The notes beneath the pieces were generated by a model that made no database searches, was not told where the DNA came from, and was given only the letters and a program-made list of their open reading frames with translations. DNA of 63,764 bases, the filler included, from Hyphochytrium catenoides (taxonomy: Eukaryota; Protista; Hyphochytriomycota): NCBI GenBank assembly GCA_900088475.1. It is 6 parts of 6 records of this genome, joined end to end, with 100 filler letters (N's around TTAATTAATTAA, not from the genome) between each part and the next. Parts side by side here need not be neighbours in the genome. Positions count along the whole stretch, not along the records: positions 28,087 to 38,519 come from FLMG01002358.1; 5 more parts are not named here. One strand, written 5' to 3'. The translations under genes and the position numbers were made by a program. Below, in pieces: positions 28,087-39,111 of this stretch (position 1 is the stretch's first letter; each line of letters opens with the position of its first letter).

Positions 28087-28470
28087 AGATTTAGAAAAGA
28101 GAGGGATGGCAGGGAGGAAGGCTAATAAAAAGGAGAGGATCTCACGGTCAAGTGCAAAAGTGTGGCGGGCATAGACACAAGGAACAACTAGGAAGAGAGA
28201 GAGAGACCTGGTAAGCTGAAGATAGTGCACACAAAATCTATGAGAGAGAAAGAACGGAGCGGTGACGACACGAACAACCTAGGAAAGGATGAGAGATAGA
28301 GAGCCGAGCTAAAGGGAGAGCGGGAGAGGAGGAGAAGGTATCAATGAAGAGCCGTACAAGTACGAACAAGTAAGAGAAAAAGGGGAGCTGAACACCGAGC
28401 GGGAGCAAGAGATGGCCCAGAGTGAGAGAGAGTGTGAATGAGGGAGGGAGAGAGAGCGAGAGCGAGAAAG

Positions 28471-28504
<34 letters not shown>

Positions 28505-28514
28505 GGAGAGAGAG

Positions 28515-28559
<45 letters not shown>

Positions 28560-30534
28560 NNNNNNNNNNNNNNNNNNNNNNNNTGTGATGAGCAGTGATG
28601 TTGAACCTCGTTTTGCCATCATCGCTATTCTGAAAAGAGTGCCTTTACTGCCACCGTTGGGAGAATAGTGCTTATCCATGTCCTAAATACTTGCGACTAG
28701 GGCTAAATATAGCTGATGCGGATGTGGGGAAGAAGAGCCTATCCTAGGAAACATTTTTACGAGGCTTAGAGTGTAGCAGGAGGATGGCCGTCTGTACTCC
28801 ATCCTACTGGCGGAGGAAGGAGATAGAGTTGGAGGCACCTGAGCGAGGGAGACGCCAACACTGTGGGTGTGCAAGAGAGAGGCAGGATGTACAAGGGCAC
28901 TCACTGCTGAGCTTTTCTCAACTCCATAGTAGTCCCACCGCAGGAACACTTGCAATTTGAATCAGACAAGCTTTCCCGGCCATGAATTTGGATTAGCTCG
29001 GTCACCCCAAACAGGTAGATGCCTTCAACGGCCTCCTTTGTGCAGTTTCCACTTCTTCGGATGGGGTGAACTGGCTTGATTAATGGATCTGTTTAACTGA
29101 ACTAATCGAAGAGCCTTGTGAGCTCTCCAAACATTCCAGATCGCAATAATAAGGCTTTGGAGTCGGGGAGATCCAGATGAGTCCTCTGACCTAGGTTGCA
29201 TTCATACTGCTCAGTACCATTCTGCGAGCGACCCTCCTTAGTGATCTCTACCGGATGTATTACAGAGGCGAAACCAAATTCTGAGACTACTTGTATCGTT
29301 CTATCCTTATCAAGGTTCCTGTTTGTTCTAGGAAGGAGCACGAAGTGGAAGGTCCGCGAGCTCTGTAGGTGGCGCAAGAGCACAAAGAGAGTAGACATTC
29401 AATGGTTGATCGTGTTGCGGCATAGACATGGCCTTGGAGGGCTTGAGGCCTCGCGCCCGTCTTCTGCATTGCTCCCAAGTTCGACTCCTGATCCTAGTGG
29501 GATTATCTAGCGTTTGCGTCCGAGTTTGCTTGAACGGTGGACGACAGGAGCAGAGCTCAGTAGCTCCCCAACCTTGCCATGACATGAAGTAATCTTACTC
29601 ACTTTTAAACGGTACTATGCGACCCACAGTGAACAACACTGCTCAATATTGTACGATAGAGGAGCCTTGTTTGTTGTTACCACTTAAGAGCCCAACTAGG
29701 TAACTTGAGAGGAGACCGGACAAATCACGCTGAAGCTTTGCCAGGTAAAAGGAGGAAGGCTGAGGTTGCAGGAAGTCATTTGTCCCCGGCCATAAGATCA
29801 AGATCAGACGTGCAGCTTGTGTAAAATGAAATAAGGAACTATATGACCTTAGAAAGCGCCAGTATCCATTGAAAGATGGGCGGAGGGGTACAAAGATCCT
29901 TGAGTGCACACGCCGCTGGAATACTGCTGACAATGAAGAAGAAGTGGGAGAGAAGAGATAAATAAGTGATCGAGGTGGTAGGCAACCACTCCGAGCAGCC
30001 AGCTTGCACTTTTGAAGGCGCTGCCACAACCGACGACACAGAATCTTTCCGCGGATTTGATCATGATTCCTTGGGTAGATCGTAAATAGAGGCTTTTGAA
30101 TTCATGATCTAGGCTGATTTGGGTCTAATATTCAGAATAGAGTCGTATCTGCGGTGGTGGTGCACTTTTCATCATCAACAACTTTCTTCTTTGAACTGCC
30201 TTCACATGGTCAAGATCATCGCGGCCATCACTCTTCACCCAGTCACCCAGACATCATGACACCCAGATCAGTGCCTTTGTGAACTGCATGGAGGCTGCAG
30301 GTAAAAAGCTAGGAGGCTGCTAGGAAAGTACACTGGGAGATTCCAGGAAGGCTCAGTTAGGTCGTGCATGAGCATTGCTAGTCCCAAGGACCAGAAGATA
30401 GTGTCGCCAGTTCATCCCAACGCCGATAGGTGTGCCCTTTGGCAACCCTAATAGCCTATGCAAGTTACTGCGTCCTGTTAGGCAATTGAGCCTGAAGCTG
30501 CGACTCCTTGCGGAAAGGGAGAGCTACATTAATT

Positions 30535-33500
30535 ATGACCGAGGATGCCTTAGTCGCTGAAGTTATCCAGGAGGTCTGTGGCGCATCGTCAGTTTGCGTC
30601 ACTTGATCTTCAAGCTGACTCGTTGTGTCAACAATTGACAGGTCACCACGGAGTTCAAAGACGATGAAGCTCGATGGAAAGCACTCGCAGAGCTGTCAAA
30701 GTCCTACCTACAAAGAAGGTCTATGTAGAATGAGTTTGCTGATGCTGAGGAAATGCACTAACATGATCCTGCTGGGCTACGTAGTGTTTCTTCTCGAGAG
30801 CTCATTGCCAAGCTCACAGAGCTTTTTGAATCATCCCCTCTGCTGAGTTCCCTTATAAAAAAGAGGGCCTGGAAGAAGAAAGATGCTGCTGCACCCAAAT
30901 GTCAGAGAGTTCTTCTTCTTTGTCACTGTCTCTCATGCATCTTGTCTTGCCTCAATAGCCTTATAAGTCTTACTGTGCTTTGATCACTCTAAAGCACTAA
31001 CAACTGTCGTCTTCCTCACAGCCATCTTACCGCAGTGGGCCTTCTCCGACGCGGACTTCAAATTACGCCAGGAGTTCAATTCAACGAACTTCATTCCCTT
31101 CCATGCCTCTGGGATGAGGTTTAGGGTATGTTGTGGGCTGGGCGAGCTTTGCATCGCATCTTTCTTACCGGGGCAATCACTTCTAGGATCTGACACCAGT
31201 CGACCTCGGACAACCAGACGCTAGCCGAACTGTCCGGGATCTAAGAGAATGCGGAATCCCTTTCACTATAGTTGGGCAGTCAGACTACTGTCTCTTCGCG
31301 AAGGAGTGGCTAACCCCGGATGGCAAGCTGAACGCCTCAAACCTCAAGGAAAAGCTGGGTGACGAGCTCGTCCCAGTTTTGACTCGCGATTACGATCCTC
31401 ATGACCCGATTAAGGAATGCATGACACTGTCATCTTTTATTGAGAACCATTGGGAGATGGGAGACAGCGACGTCTACATGCATCAGGTATGGACATTACA
31501 GGAGGTGTGAGTGCCACGTGGCGCCAAAGCCAAACAAGGCAAAGTATATTCAGGATATTAGACAGCTAAGATCCTCACTTTCTTCTTGCAGTGGCAGTTC
31601 CCGCTTTCGAAGACTGCATCTCTTTTTATGTCCCAGAAGTCGAAACCTGTTCCCTGTCTTGGGGACAACATTCTCCGTTATTGGCTAGATATCTGCAGAG
31701 GTAGGTTGTTCTTAGACTATACTGGTCATTGATCTACTCCTCTATGCTACCACTACGTGCCTCTAACCATGATACTCTACTCAGCTGTCTCACCATTCTG
31801 CGCATATCCTGCTCCATTGCCGGTCTGACCTTTACTGAGCAGGTGACAACCCGCTTCAGTATCTCTTCATCGGCTGTGCTGGGACGAATACAAAGCTGCA
31901 TAATGACCCCGGAGGACTGGATATCATGATAACCTGCCTTTATGTACGAACCGATGTTGCGATGAAAGTCGTCCTTAACGCTCGATTGACAATTTCTGGC
32001 CTTTAGGGTGAGAAGGAGGTGCACTTAGTTCATCGAGAAGATGGCTGGAAGTTCAAGGATCTTGAGGTATTGTGACTGTAGAGAGGGTGTTGGTCCCAAT
32101 ACTTTGCAACCTTTCCCGCAGAGGTTTGCGTTCTGATCTACTCGTCCTCTATTCTGTTCAACATGACCCCTAGCTCATAAAGCCCCTCATTTGCTGGACG
32201 CTAGTCCTAGTGTGCCAAACGCTCGTCTCCTGAAGTTGCCCAATTAGGCTCTTCCCGTACTAGGGTCTCTTGACACCGCTCGGGCTGATTGTTCAATCCA
32301 CATCTAATCACATTTTTTGCATGCACAGAACTTTGACGCTCTAGACCTAGACCAGTATCCTCTTCTCGCCTCTACTCGGGTCTGGAAGCATATACTGAAG
32401 CCTGGAGAGATCCTCTACCTTCCGGAGGGAACCTTTCACACCGTGAAGAATCTTAGCGATTGTTTCTCGTACCACCAGCTGCAGCTTGACACCGTTAATC
32501 TCCCCAACTTCTTCCGTTCAATGATGGCTGACGATGCGCCTGAATTGCATCATGCAGAAATAATATGGAATGCAGCCCATGACATAATGAAGGTATCGTG
32601 ATGTTGCTTGGCCCAGCTGGTACTCTGCTGTCTTCTTTTTGCTCTCTCGACCTAAAAGCCATTGACATCTCCTCCGTCAAGCATAGATTTGTTCCCTGTT
32701 CGTGCCCTAAGGCCTTTTACCCATCCTCAACTTTTTGATTGTTCTAGGTTGTGGATTCAGTCAGAGATATGCCCGCGCCTAGTAGAGATCAACGACTTAC
32801 TGCTGAGAGCGGCATTCAGACCTTAAAGGCCCTGCGGCACGTGATAAGAGCCCAAACTCTGGACGAGGGCTATTCAGGCGTGGACTTCCTGGACTTTTTG
32901 AAGCTACTGGGGGACATTGATCAGTCCATTCTAAGGTGATGAAAATCTAAAGGCCAAGCAAAGTGGGGTTAGCGGCCAACATATTTGCCAAATATGCTAC
33001 AAAGAACGATTTGTCCTAAGCAATATGTGATAGTGAGCAATGCAGGACAAAGATATTAGCAAGGCCATGGCTAACATGCGCTCTGCAGCTTCGAAGGAGG
33101 TGGAACAGATGGGGCGCCGCAGTCTTCAAGAGAAGATTATAGCTACACACTCACGCTTAAAAGCAAGGAACGACACGTCAAAGCTCAGCAACTGGCAGCC
33201 CGGAAGGCCTGGGATCGCCTAAACCTCTCCGTACGAGATATCGTCTCGGTACGGACTGCAGATGGAAGGCACCTCAGGGCGGAAGTGGTAGAGCTGCTGG
33301 AAGAGGTGAGGTACCTTTCTCCATAACATGTCGACACTCTACCTATGGCACGACCCAACCTATCTATCCGATCTTTGAATCTTATGTCACTTGTTCATCC
33401 TTGGTCGCCTTCTCGGTGTCCTCTTTATGGATCTCGAAGTGAAACACCTTTCGGCTAGACCTAATAGATCTATTCCAGGCGGAGGTAGCGAAGGTCCACT

Positions 33501-33778
33501 ATACGGGATGGCCCCGCTACTATGATGAGCTCCATCTCATCTCTAGTCTCTCCCGAGGGGAAAGCAAACCTGACGGGAAGAAGAAAAGGAAGAGGACAGA
33601 GGCCAGCGACATCTCCCCACTTGAGATTGTGCGCGTCGTATGGACAGATAAACAGGAATACGATGCAGTTGTCCTCTGGGTTTGCAAGCAACCTGTAGTT
33701 CGAGTACGCTATCTACAGTTTGGAGGAGATAGTTGGCTGCAACTGGTCAGTCCTGTACAGGTTGCTCGAGTGCAGTGA
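30535..33778 (+). CDS. JmjC-domain 2-oxoglutarate oxygenase with PAH-like N-terminus and C-terminal Tudor/chromo-barrel modules, ~12 exons
   Basis: In-phase GT-AG splicing gives ...GIPFTIVG...YMHQWQFP...QYLFIGCAGTNTKLHNDPGG (HxD)...GEKEVHL...LKPGEILYLPEGTFHTVKNL (distal His)...DIVSVRTADGRHLRAEVVELLEEAEVAKVHYTGWPRYYDE...IVRVVWTDKQEYDAVVLWV..VRVRYLQFG. TGA at 33776-33778. Confidence 0.8.
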
Positions 33779-34780
33779 CCTCAAATAAGCTTGCAAGGGC
33801 AAGCTGTCGTATCAGGATAGCTCTCTGCTGTGTCCTCCCTCCTCATACCCTCCATCGGTCTTTCCATGGAGCTAGGTCTATGTTCTTACTCTGTCCGGCT
33901 TCGTCGTTCCTCATTTATTTTGAAAAGTTCTTACTGCCGAGGTCTGCTGCTAAGTGCTATCGAGTGGGCGGTACTGGCAGTCTATAAAAAACAATAAATT
34001 GCCTCTTGAGCTATTGACGCCTTTGTATTATCTCTGTCGGTCCGGCTGTTCTCTGCGAGTGCCCTGACCAAGGCCACTAGGAGCAAATGTCAAGGGAAGA
34101 AACCCGCATGACATCGCGGAAAGAGTCTCTCAAGGCAGCTATGGCTCCGTCAGGTCCTCCATCGGGCAATGCAATGGGTTATTAAGAGGTACAGATGCGA
34201 CAGAGATGTTGGTCCGTCCATTTCAAGCTAAGCTTGGACTTCTAGACGCCCAGCCAGTCTCCTGTCCCTGCAAGTGGCAAGGCTATTTGCAGAGTCCTAC
34301 GCCCAGCCAGGACTACTGACCGATTAGCGCCGTGCGGAACTCCTAGTGAAAGGAGAAGGGGCGACATTGCAGACCGTCATCTCTCACTCTGAAGGTTCAC
34401 GTTCTGTGGATCTCACACACTATCGAGTCTTCACCAGTCAGATAAGGCCGTTGGCGGCTAACAATAAATCTTTCAGATCTTTCATGAACTCCGAAAGCCT
34501 GAAAGACTCATTTCCCTCACGCTGTGGTACATTAGCGGCCACCTCTATGGTCTCCTCGAAGCTTAAAACCGGAGTTTCACCCTGTGATGGAAGATTGTTT
34601 TTTGTCTGCACTTTTGACGCTGGGAAAGACTCAGATCGGCAGCTTTTGAAGCTTGAAGCTTTGGCGGGCATTGAGGTCCTGCCGGTCAGGTTGCTAGAAC
34701 CAGGGGCAGCTAGAGCTTAAAAGTTTAAGAAGGCTGTTGTTCGTCAACCTAGAGCTCTAACTTGGGAGCCTATCGGCACC

Positions 34781-37700
34781 ATGTCGAGCCAAAGTACAAG
34801 GCGTAAGTCTTCCAAGAGCAAGAAGGACTTTGCTGGGGCTTCAAGTGCAGCAAGTTCGGTTTTTGCTGAGGTGAGTCCTGGCCCCATCATCATGTCCAAT
34901 GGAGTCCACTTCTTATAACGCCCTATCATTACCAGCCAAAGAGAGATCCACTCGCAGAGATTGTTGAGGAGCCTACGATTTTCGGGGTGGACCCTAACTC
35001 CGGCGATGTCGAAGACGAGTCTCATGTCCTTGCACCGATCGCCAAGTACGCCATACTAGGCATGATCTGCTTGATGTCGTTTGCGATTCGGCTCTTTGCC
35101 GTGGTCCGCTATGAGAGTGTGAGTAGAGTCACTCCGCAGGCTTCCCACCAGCGACCGTCGACCTCATCACCCATCTCTTTCCACAGGTCATACACGAGTT
35201 TGATCCTTACTTTAACTTCAGAACAACCAAGTATCTTGCTCAGGAAGGCTTTCTAGAGTTTTTGGACTGGTTTGATGATCGAGCTTGGTATCCACTTGGC
35301 CGTATCATTGGTGGCACTATCTACCCTGGGCTGATGTATACAGCTGCGCTCATCTACTGGGCGGCCAATAAGTTGGCCATCACCATTAACATAAGGAATA
35401 TGTGCGTGTTCCTGGCGCCAATCTTCGCAGCAAACACAGCCATTGCCGCGTACCTTTTGACAAAGGAGGTTGGTCATAACTTCCTTTGCCTTTCTATATT
35501 GCTCGCATCAGCGCTTTTCTGGGACTGGGCGCCACTTTCTACCTGTGTCTGCGTTGATGTAGAAAATTATCTTGATCTAACGTGAGACAACTCTCTTGAT
35601 AGGTCACAAAAAGGACGAGTGCTGGGCTCTTAGCTGCTGCATTTGCCGGTACAGTTCCATCGTATATCTCTAGGTCTGTTGGCGGCTCCTACGATAATGA
35701 AGGTGTAGCCATCTTCGCGCTCATCTTTACCTTCTACCTTTGGATCAAGGCAGTGCACACTGGTTCCATGTTCTGGGCTGGTTGCTGTGCGCTGGCCTAC
35801 TTCTACATGGTGGCAGCCTGGGGTGGTTACGTGTTCATTATCAATATGATCCCAATCCACGTCTTGGTTCTGCTCTTCGGAGGGCGCTATTCTCCCCGCC
35901 TATACGTAGCATACTCGACCTTCTACGCTCTGGGTAGTCTTCTGGCGATGCAAGTACCGTTTGTAGGCTTCAATGTCGTCAAGCAAGCAGAATGTGCAGG
36001 GTCCCATGGAGTCTTCGTCGTTCTGCAAGGTAAGATGGAAGCGCTGTTCACGACGCTATAACGCTTTGATGTCATACGTTCTCTATCGTTAGCCGTTCTG
36101 TGTCTGCCATAGCTACATCTGTCCACAAAGACTAAGTTACTGACCTTCCCGCTCTGTTCCTGAAACCTTGCTCACGGTGCAGTTTACGTCTTCGTGAACT
36201 GGATCCGAACATTTTTCACCGCGAAGGCATTCACTCGGCTTATCACGTTGGCGGCGGTCGCTTTGACGGCGCTAGTTACTGCTTTCCTAGTGGCGCTGCA
36301 GTTGATGGGCAAGGTCCAATGGACGGGTCGAAGCTTGACTTTGCTGGATCCAACCTACGCGTCGAAGTACATCCCTATCATTGCTTCCGTCAGTGAGCAC
36401 CAACCCACCACATGGACTTCCTTCTTCTTTGACTTGCACATTCTTGTGCCATTCTCCCCAGTTGGATTGTACTTCCTATTCCAGAACATCACAGATGGCG
36501 GCATCTTCGTCATACTCTACGGAACTCTTTCTTGGTACTTTGCAGGGGTCATGGTGAGGCTAATGCTGACGCTCGCCCCGGCTGCGTGCATTCTGGCTGC
36601 CATCGGTATGTCCTCGGTCATTAGACGGTTCTGCGGCTTCCTCAAGATCATTGACGGCCCAGAGCCTGCCTCTGAAGCTACAGAGGCTGACAAGAAGAGG
36701 AGAGCTGCTTCCATTAAGCCTTCAAAAGTTGCAACGCCATTACCTAAGGGTCTTGCCTTGGTCGTCCTTGGAGGTGCTACTTTGTTGCTTGTCAAGTACG
36801 CTTTTCATACCACCTTCGTCTCTTCTATGGCCTACTCCCATCCTTCGATTGTGATCGAGGCTGGCAGGCAGCGTGATGGAACCAGAGTCATGTTTGACGA
36901 CTATCGTGAGGCGGTAAGTACTTGCCCTCTAGGGACAAGCCTTACTTCTATCAACTAACATTCTTCTCTTTCACTCCCTTTCCCATCATAGTACTACTGG
37001 CTTAGACAGAACACTGATCCAAATGCAAAGATTCTTTCTTGGTGGGACTACGGCTATCAGATGTCAGCGATGGCCAACCGCACGGTCATCGTAGACAATA
37101 ACACCTGGAACAACACGCACATCGCAACGGTGGGTCGTGCTCTGGCATCTACTGAGGAGAATGCCTATCCAATCTTGGAGAGCTTGGACGTAGACTATGT
37201 ACTAGTCATCTTCGGAGGAGTGACGGGCTACTCGTCAGACGATATCAACAAGTTCCTATGGCCAGTCAGGATTGGTTCCGGCGTCTTCCCTAACGACATG
37301 CCCAAAGAGCACGATTTCTACTCAGCTTCAGGAAACTTTGACGTCGGGCCCGGCGGCTCTAAGCATCTACTCAACTGCGTAGCTTACAAGCTCTGCTACT
37401 ACCGCTTTGGAGAGCTAATGACAGACTATGGCAAGCCTACAGGCTATGATCGTGTCCGTAATGCTGAAGTGGGCGTGAAGAACGTAAAGCTGACGACTAT
37501 GGAGGAGGCTTTTACCTCGGAGCACTGGATTGTTAGGATTTTTAAGGTGAAGAAGAGGCCCAACTTTATTCTCAGCCGCTCGGCAGCTGTTCGCCAAGCG
37601 AAAAGCGATGACGGTCCAGACCTCGCAAGTAAGTTCATCTCCCTTATCGTGCTCATTATAGTTAGTTCCTTAATGACTGATATGCATCTGCTTATGCAGA

Positions 37701-38061
37701 GGAGAAAACCAAGTTCTTAGGATGCTTCGTCTCGGAGGCAGCTTTGGGCGACGATAAGGTTTACAACGGCGGCTCCACTGGTTCTAACTATCAAATGGCC
37801 CTTGCGCACGCCGTAGCAAAGGAGAAGAAATACTTTGCAATCTCTCGCGTTGGGGGCGAAGGCCATGTCTTTGCCTTCAACCGATTGAAAAAATCCAAGT
37901 TCGATGGCAATGATGGCGGTGGCTGTCAGAGACCGTGCTTGGACCTCAATGACAAGTTCTGCGGCTGTGCTGATGCTGCATGTGACGAAAGTGGCTCTCG
38001 AAGGCCTGCCACTGAAGAGCATAACCGGCGATGGGCTGTCTATGAGCGACTGTCTGCCTAA
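34781..38061 (+). CDS. STT3: Oligosaccharyltransferase catalytic subunit STT3 with C-terminal Cys-rich extension
   Basis: [80 protein letters not shown] and [13 protein letters not shown]. The last exon (37700-38061) splices in frame. Confidence 0.96.
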
Positions 38062-39111
38062 GGAAAGAGGAGGAGCGCGCCCTGGCAGAGTGAACAGCAG
38101 GACGAGTGCAGGCTTTTTGGAATTGCTTCCTTCTCTTAGAGTTCAGTGGTGGTACATTCAGAATAGATAGGGGATTTATCAAGGTTAATTGACTATTTGA
38201 GATTGCTTAGAGGGTAATGAAATGCCATATATCGGAGTGGTCGGTGTTTCTTTGTTATGAGAAGAGAAAGGGAGCTGCCTCTTCTTACTCCGCTAAACCT
38301 ACACGGCACAATAAATGCGTGGAATTTGGCGGGGTCATTATTCCTGAGAGTGGCCCTCAGTGTTCTGTGTCCGACCCTCTTGCAGCACTCTGTCCCCCCT
38401 GTTTGGGCTTGGAAGGTCTAACCTTCGTGCCCCCTCTCCTTACCATTATTACAGCATTAGACTGTCTTTCTTTCTCTCTCTCTCATCCTTTCTCCCTCAC
38501 TCTCTCTCTCTCTCTCTCTNNNNNNNNNNNNNNNNNNNNNNNNNNNNNNNNNNNNNNNNNNNNTTAATTAATTAANNNNNNNNNNNNNNNNNNNNNNNNN
38601 NNNNNNNNNNNNNNNNNNNTATGGAATCGTGCACTCGTGCAGTTCACGACTTTAATCAGGCCTGTAGATAGAACTATGTTCTGTAAGAGGAAAGCAACGA
38701 GTGAAGCTTGCTTCCTTTATTTCCTTTAATTAACCTCAAGCCTCGTCCCAAGCAAGAACCAAGCTTTTCTTCCTTTTGAAAATCTTCACTTCAACACTCC
38801 CCTAAGGCCTTACATTATTAATGGCTCTGCCAGTTGATAAAGAACCCAAACATCACATCAAAGCTAAACTGTAGTAAGGCCTTAGTTCATAGGAAAGAAG
38901 GGCTTACAGTTCTATCTCCATATCTCAAGCTTTTGTGACTTATGAAGAAGAACACCAAAAAAATAGCTGTTTCAGCATCAGTTCATTGACAAATCTTCCA
39001 ATGCACGTCTCCAAGCAATAGCACTAAAGAAAGCGATGGTCAGCACCTTAACTTGCTACCTCAGCGTTTCCTACGTCGGAGGTCAACCATTTGTATTCTG
39101 AGGATAAGTAT

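Follow-up and report, generated by a model that had tools for sequence, protein, structure and literature searches.

KDM4A-C join a JmjC enzyme to a C-terminal interdigitated double Tudor; further features of KDM4 are a JmjN domain, an iron motif of the HxE type, a Zn site and two PHD fingers (PMC2938197). ARID4A/B (RBBP1) have a double Tudor of the same swapped-strand topology, there not joined to an oxygenase, and JMJD5/KDM8 and JMJD6 are without Tudor or chromo modules. In diatoms, 'JMJ-CHROMO' proteins of unknown specificity were tabulated in a 2011 review (Maumus et al., PMC3145265). Here, we analyzed a gene of Hyphochytrium catenoides (assembly GCA_900088475.1) that lies at positions 30535-33778 on the plus strand of a 63,764-nucleotide stretch of DNA, hereafter the window, which joins parts of six records end to end; the part holding the gene, positions 28,087 to 38,519, comes from FLMG01002358.1. 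The product of this gene probably combines a JmjC oxygenase core and a hybrid double Tudor in one protein, which would be tethered to marked chromatin in order to demethylate or hydroxylate.

Compared with these systems, the window's protein pairs enzyme and reader as KDM4A-C do, according to the model obtained for a homologue, but it has an HxD motif and a Cupin_8-type core in place of the KDM4 features, and sequence identity between its C-terminal module and the KDM4 Tudors is 12-18% (12-14% for ARID4A/B). Its nearest solved catalytic domains are JMJD5/KDM8 and JMJD6, which share the HxD...H arrangement, with an HxxxN motif common to JMJD6. The diatom JmjC-chromodomain proteins likewise couple a reader to the enzyme, and the 'JMJ-CHROMO' genes of 2011 are probably chromodomain-bearing members of the window's own family.

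The JmjC catalytic core

All Pfam and PDB searches of the window's protein were run exon by exon, on separate pieces; those with exons 2-8 and 10-12 yielded no useful match. Exon 9 alone passed the Pfam Cupin_8 model (E 5e-8, 33.6 bits against a cut-off of 27.4) and also touched Pfam JmjC_2 and JmjC, while its PDB sequence matches were PHF8 and JMJD5; homologues scored 38-49 bits on Cupin_8. The three iron ligands (H 31899, D 31905 and H 32437) aligned to the family-invariant residues H163, D165 and H236, and K 32013, situated on a GxK strand, aligned to the family-invariant K180. By analogy with FIH and JMJD6, we infer that this lysine, in strand 4, binds 2-oxoglutarate. Overall, 41 of 46 family-invariant residues were identical in the window's protein, exon 5 keeping the invariants F, W, P, Y, P, Y, H and Q, and exon 8 keeping G, K, H and R. 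Since the triad, the lysine and the invariant residues are intact, the enzyme is predicted to be active. The JmjC domain with an intact Fe triad that a preliminary description had read from the window was thus upheld, with a Cupin_8 match on exon 9 and the ligands and lysine in place.

The third iron ligand falls within an HxxxN motif (H-TVK-N). This motif is counted among the synapomorphies of the histone-demethylase clade, to which JMJD6 and JMJD4 also belong (PMC2938197). When a profile of fifteen family cores was searched against solved structures, JMJD5 was the best match (2.5e-12), aligned over the C-terminal half of the profile only, followed by KDM7 (~2e-6 to 4e-6), PHF8 (~1e-5 to 2e-5) and TYW5 (1.6e-5). 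JMJD6 (3e-5) was the only solved enzyme aligned over nearly the whole profile, and FIH and JMJD7 came at ~2e-4 to 7e-3. The earlier reading of the core as a hydroxylase-type JmjC is roughly right, the core being of the Cupin_8 type. As to the JMJD4/6/8 subfamily named there, the HxxxN motif is present, but JMJD5 is nearest, and KDM7 and PHF8 come next, ahead of JMJD6. The JMJD8-type HxH motif was absent from the window's protein.

As for KDM4 itself, Pfam matched neither JmjN nor PHD when the exon pieces and 58 members of the family were scanned; membership of the KDM4/JMJD2 group was ruled out by this absence and by the HxD motif. Taken together, the core is predicted from its sequence to be an active Fe(II)/2-oxoglutarate JmjC oxygenase of the Cupin_8 type, which would act either as a demethylase or as a hydroxylase.

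The C-terminal module

The last two exons encode a module that is best seen through its homologues. A profile of this C-terminal module, built without the window's rows, matched exon 12 at E 1.7e-17; among 150 family representatives it detected the module in 66, mostly at the extreme C-terminus. Pfam Tudor-knot (PF11717, cut-off 20.8) matched the homologues P0005 (24.3 bits), P0015 (25.4) and P0002 (21.2), and the homologous segment also gave weak matches to MSL3-chromo and to Tudor_2 of KDM4A. For exon 12 itself, the language-model neighbours were Tudor-knot/Agenet clusters (score 0.89, a lead only).

An AlphaFold2 model was made for residues 726-862 of the Pythium oligandrum homologue P0005, from an alignment of 19 rows. 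The model (predicted local distance difference test score, pLDDT, 91.4; predicted template modelling score 0.83) was all-beta, two of its strands running without a break for 21 and 20 residues. The top 17 Foldseek matches in the PDB were interdigitated double Tudors, namely KDM4A, KDM4B, RBBP1/ARID4A and ARID4B (E 1.6e-5 to 1.3e-3), with KDM4C at rank 21 and side-by-side tandem Tudors (UHRF1, FMRP) at E > 0.09. Using VIA-align, KDM4A was matched over 103-113 residues (Z 7.8-7.9), and the single chromo-barrels TIP60, MRG2, Esa1 and PHF1/19 scored Z 7.8-8.7 over model ranges of ~5-137; as these single barrels span nearly the entire model, each lobe appears to be assembled from both halves. Neighbours of the module in the ESM Atlas were clusters of RBB1NT (ARID4) and KDM4 Tudor_2, as well as the oomycete JmjC cluster itself.

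The window's rows aligned without gaps through both long strands and kept the aromatic signature (VHY-x-G-W...YDE) together with its counterpart in the second repeat. These results show homology between the last ~130 residues and a module modelled as a hybrid double Tudor in the Pythium homologue; in the model, this fold would comprise two chromo-barrel-like lobes that swap two long strands (beta2-beta3), as in KDM4A-C and ARID4A/B. The double Tudor or chromo-barrel C-terminus proposed earlier is accordingly borne out through homologues, by Tudor-knot matches and by the model, and can be specified further as a hybrid double Tudor.

A family in oomycetes and diatoms

A search of 1.84 billion representative proteins with exon 9 recovered 157 relatives at E ≤ 1e-3, the best at 56-57% identity, and no protein more than ~57% identical to exon 9 was found in the collections searched. 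The window's core matched the family members at E 2.8e-28. Named members include proteins of Pythium oligandrum (TMW58044.1 / A0A8K1C7H4), Peronospora effusa (CAI5723638.1), Phytophthora infestans (PITG_16720) and Phytophthora sojae (PHYSODRAFT_481811), and a Plasmopara halstedii protein that was automatically named 'putative JmjC domain, Chromo-like domain superfamily protein'. Others belong to Albugo, Lagenidium and Bremia, to the diatoms Corethron hystrix (A0A7S1BU11) and Attheya, and to many environmental sequences. The full-text searches that were run brought up no functional study of these proteins.

Scanning 58 members with Pfam (E ≤ 1e-3) revealed Cupin_8 in 57 and Chromo in 29, along with single occurrences of Tudor-knot, an HMG box and PDZ. 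Reader modules thus vary within the family: the chromodomain is N-terminal in 29 of 58, the C-terminal hybrid Tudor is present in 66 of 150, and some members, such as P0013, have both. Oomycete orthologues have a common, colinear JmjC core with the window's protein (~50-56% identity in exon 9), the same helical region after the core, and the same C-terminal double-Tudor module (~30-34% identity). They also possess a conserved N-terminal domain of ~100 residues (P0015:1-112), whose VLATSAPL motif contains an invariant LAT..PL core, and a long linker of low complexity. Neither is detectable in the window; the window's gene, in contrast, has 11 introns and a short N-terminus without a detectable relative. 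The diatom proteins Attheya P0014 and Corethron hystrix P0055 belong to the same JmjC family by sequence, and P0055 carries the window's C-terminal module. Many diatom-type members have an N-terminal Pfam Chromo domain, which the window's protein is without.

The invariant core and the colinear, putative C-terminal double Tudor place the window's protein in this family, and the N-terminal domain that it does not have is variable among members. Profile matches show a JmjC core with a C-terminal double Tudor to be the norm in this family, whose members occur across oomycetes and diatoms and have entries in NCBI and UniProt. The idea of a lineage-specific or uncatalogued architecture did not survive this comparison, given that the C-terminal module occurs in 66 of the 150 representatives and that members are already deposited in both databases. 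The window's protein adds a divergent new member to this existing but uncharacterized family, and its N-terminus is short and unusual.

Gene model and 5' end

Twelve segments on the plus strand (Table 1) join in phase into 1821 nucleotides, i.e., 606 codons followed by a terminal TGA at 33776-33778, which is the sole stop of the joined frame. All 11 introns are GT-AG introns of 61-262 nucleotides; each contains stop codons, seven of them in every frame, and several have a branch-like CTRAY motif 18-27 nucleotides from the acceptor. According to a codon-usage score trained on the exons of a neighbouring STT3 gene, the proposed frame was the best in all 12 exons, with exon 4 nearly tied with another frame. 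After retraining, exons 1-3 scored +0.19 to +0.28 bits per codon and exon 4 ~0, compared with a mean of -0.28 ± 0.24 and a maximum of 0.115 for introns on the same score.

Table 1. Exons of the Hyphochytrium catenoides JmjC gene and neighbouring features, in window coordinates (LLR, codon log-likelihood ratio per codon)
Feature	Position	Strand	Description
Exon 1	30535-30573	+	ATG, 13 codons, GT donor; LLR +0.28; predicted only, without homologue
Exon 2	30642-30718	+	Helical N-terminal region, 25 codons; AG/GT sites and phase; LLR +0.24; predicted only
Exon 3	30785-30846	+	20 codons; donor uncertain, alternative at 30900 in same phase
Exon 4	31022-31125	+	Weakest exon, predicted only; splice sites and phase; LLR ~0
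Exon 5	31187-31486	+	N-terminal part of JmjC/Cupin_8; aligns to P0015 246-334 and P0005 298-393
Exon 6	31592-31700	+	JmjC block WQFPL...YWLD; phmmer 6e-12 to family; P0015 335-370
Exon 7	31843-31943	+	Strand with HxD iron ligands, H 31899-31901 and D 31905-31907
Exon 8	32007-32066	+	GxK strand, predicted 2-oxoglutarate-binding lysine 32013-32015; P0015 from 405
Exon 9	32329-32592	+	88 residues; C-terminal half of JmjC barrel, third ligand H 32437-32439 (HxxxN), then helices
Exon 10	32748-32935	+	Helical region after JmjC; phmmer 1e-5 to oomycete proteins, colinear
Exon 11	33089-33305	+	Linker and strands 1-2 of first Tudor repeat; phmmer 2e-6
Exon 12	33479-33778	+	Rest of first repeat (VHYTGW...YDE), basic linker, second Tudor repeat, stop
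STT3 gene	~34987-37720	+	Multi-exon; three pieces match Pfam STT3
Open reading frame	37744-38061	+	105 residues, Gly/Cys-rich
(AG)n microsatellite	28419-28559		Near edge of piece
(TC)n microsatellite	38465-38519		Near edge of piece

When family proteins were compared with the window using tblastn, colinear matches were obtained to exons 5-7 and 9, and in a subset also to exons 10, 11 and 12. Local alignment of each exon to P0015 of Peronospora effusa placed exon 5 up to residue 334, exon 6 at 335-370, a split codon at 371, exon 7 at 372-404, exon 8 from 405, exon 9 at 427-514, exon 10 from 515, exon 11 up to 668 and exon 12 from 669. In the multiple alignment, the exon 11 row ends exactly where the exon 12 row starts, with no residue lost or gained. 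Because the exons tile the continuous sequence of the homologues in this manner, the seven junctions among exons 5-12 are supported without RNA. The preliminary description's single in-phase reading frame of 12 exons therefore agrees with the splice sites, the single terminal stop and, from exon 5 onward, the homologues, whereas exons 1-4 are predicted only, from frame, splice sites and codon usage. The locus thus holds an intact gene, rich in introns and, going by the range of the family, probably of a stramenopile, that encodes a protein of ~606 residues (624 with an alternative exon-3 donor). A pseudogene was ruled out by the intact frame and the invariant residues kept, and an Rfam search for an RNA gene in the region gave no match.

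A somewhat unlikely alternative, though the most probable of those considered here, concerns the 5' end, which may be wrong in that exons 1-4 are partly or wholly untranslated region or mis-joined, with the donor at 30900 used instead or with further exons upstream. The homologues give no support for exons 1-4, alignments of exon 4 to them were inconsistent, and the frame score of that exon is tied with another frame. The exon-3 donor at 30847 (GTTCCC) has a T at +3, seen in none of the other ten donors, and an alternative donor in the same phase, 30900|30901 (GTCAGA), resembles those of introns 1 and 2. The extension that it would add (30846-30900) encodes 18 basic, lysine-rich residues resembling a nuclear localization signal, and its coding-like codon usage lies above every intron frame. 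Moreover, the model has 94 residues before the JmjC domain, versus 130-300 in the homologues. Against this alternative, codon usage in exons 1-3 also exceeds every intron frame, the exon phases close exactly, and a stop codon directly precedes exon 5, so that an upstream exon is required. In addition, the oomycete N-terminal domain was not found on either strand, whether by profiles of 4 and 19 sequences (28600-31300) or by tblastn (28600-31200), and no N-terminal chromodomain was detected at 28600-31200 on either strand by tblastn of all family proteins. Word searches with exons 9 and 12 yielded no close relative in the length band searched.

Proposed function

We propose that conserved aromatic residues of the double Tudor (HY-x-x-W...YDE) recognize a methylated lysine in a histone tail and that the module thereby keeps the oxygenase on marked chromatin, where the oxygenase would demethylate or hydroxylate a nearby residue of a histone or chromatin protein. 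By analogy, this arrangement would amount to KDM4 logic placed on a different JmjC clade. An earlier suggestion had been a chromatin enzyme joining partner recruitment, mark reading and oxidation; of this, JmjC oxidation and a double methyl-mark reader are supported, and recruitment of a partner through a PAH domain is not.

Several observations weigh against the proposal. Demethylase chemistry is not established, because the nearest solved enzyme by sequence profile, JMJD5, is an arginine hydroxylase. Exons 11 and 12 had no Pfam or PDB sequence match on their own, and the fold was predicted on a homologue ~30% identical to the window's protein. The best whole-module match in VIA-align was the bacterial YdhK (Z 10), and template modelling scores of the model against KDM4 Tudors were low (0.33-0.39), owing to a different orientation of the lobes. 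In ARID4, interdigitated Tudors have been connected with ligands that are not methyl-lysine. Finally, exons 1-4 had no match in any family member by tblastn, phmmer or per-exon alignment.

An alternative is a JMJD5/JMJD6-like hydroxylase that acts on a non-histone substrate, with a double Tudor that binds nucleic acid, methyl-arginine or another ligand that is not methyl-lysine. We consider this unlikely. It is favored by the core-profile search, in which JMJD5 was the nearest solved relative and JMJD6 the only one covering nearly the whole profile, by the assignment of the core to Cupin_8, and by the rarity of chromatin fusions in the FIH/JMJD5 clade (PMC2938197). However, half of the scanned family members also have a classical chromodomain, the HxxxN motif marks the histone-demethylase clade (JMJD6 included; PMC2938197), KDM7 and PHF8 were the next-best profile matches, and the chromo-barrel aromatic residues are conserved. 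A mark-guided oxygenase acting on chromatin is the reading that we prefer.

The N-terminal region

The first ~60 residues of the window's protein, split over exons of 13, 25 and 20 codons, are predicted to be helical. The preliminary description had likened them to PAH domains, and it could be imagined that they fold as a four-helix PAH bundle of the Sin3 type and recruit a partner helix, making the protein a three-part enzyme; we regard this as improbable. The hydrophobic spacing of exons 1-3, compared by eye, fits PAH (PAH1) without gaps, including LF...P.L, which is a lead only. The exon 2 and exon 3 pieces, on the other hand, had no Pfam match even at E 10 and no PDB match, although pieces of 20-25 residues could hardly score. 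Furthermore, no PAH domain (PF02671) was present among the 58 family members scanned with Pfam, the N-terminus showed no homology to any family member, and exons 1-4 are themselves predicted only.

The N-terminal domain of the oomycete orthologues offers a second line of comparison. Its model (pLDDT 89) consists of a helix, a hairpin and a four-helix bundle, similar in size to PAH, and SIN3B PAH1 appeared in its VIA-align match list, at rank 49 (Z 5.7, root-mean-square deviation 4.8). Bromodomains (Z 6-7.6), the commonest weak matches, nevertheless outranked SIN3B PAH1, and all of these Z scores lie below the level that is meaningful for helical bundles. The domain had no Pfam family and no Foldseek match (best E 0.9); Pfam found no PAH in the oomycete N-termini, and a profile of the domain found no Sin3 in the PDB. 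Judged by sequence, this four-helix domain and the window's N-terminus are not detectably related, which further argues against a PAH domain in the window.

Genomic surroundings

Downstream of the JmjC gene, on the same strand, lies a multi-exon gene for STT3, the catalytic subunit of oligosaccharyltransferase, three open reading frame pieces of which match Pfam STT3 (1e-17 to 1e-23). Directly after it follows a Gly/Cys-rich open reading frame without a Pfam match. Two microsatellites lie near the two edges of the piece (Table 1).

Implications for the family

Beyond the single protein, a broader and tentative possibility, to which we give somewhat less than even weight, is that the family represents a non-KDM4 JmjC clade, restricted to or centered on stramenopiles, that has a KDM4/ARID4-like hybrid double Tudor, often together with a chromodomain, and erases or hydroxylates an as yet unassigned histone mark, with the window's copy adding at the N-terminus a third, helical domain that would bind a partner and may be PAH-like. 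If true, either the fusion of the hybrid Tudor with JmjC enzymes would have happened on two occasions, or the module would have moved between clades by shuffling.

For the window itself, the outcome is mostly annotation. For the family, the combination of a hydroxylase-like JmjC core with a hybrid double Tudor, which is most familiar from the human KDM4 demethylases, makes these proteins clear candidates. Major crop pathogens and primary producers are found among the oomycetes and diatoms, two groups whose chromatin enzymes are poorly characterized; in these organisms, the family may provide a mark-guided histone demethylase or hydroxylase.

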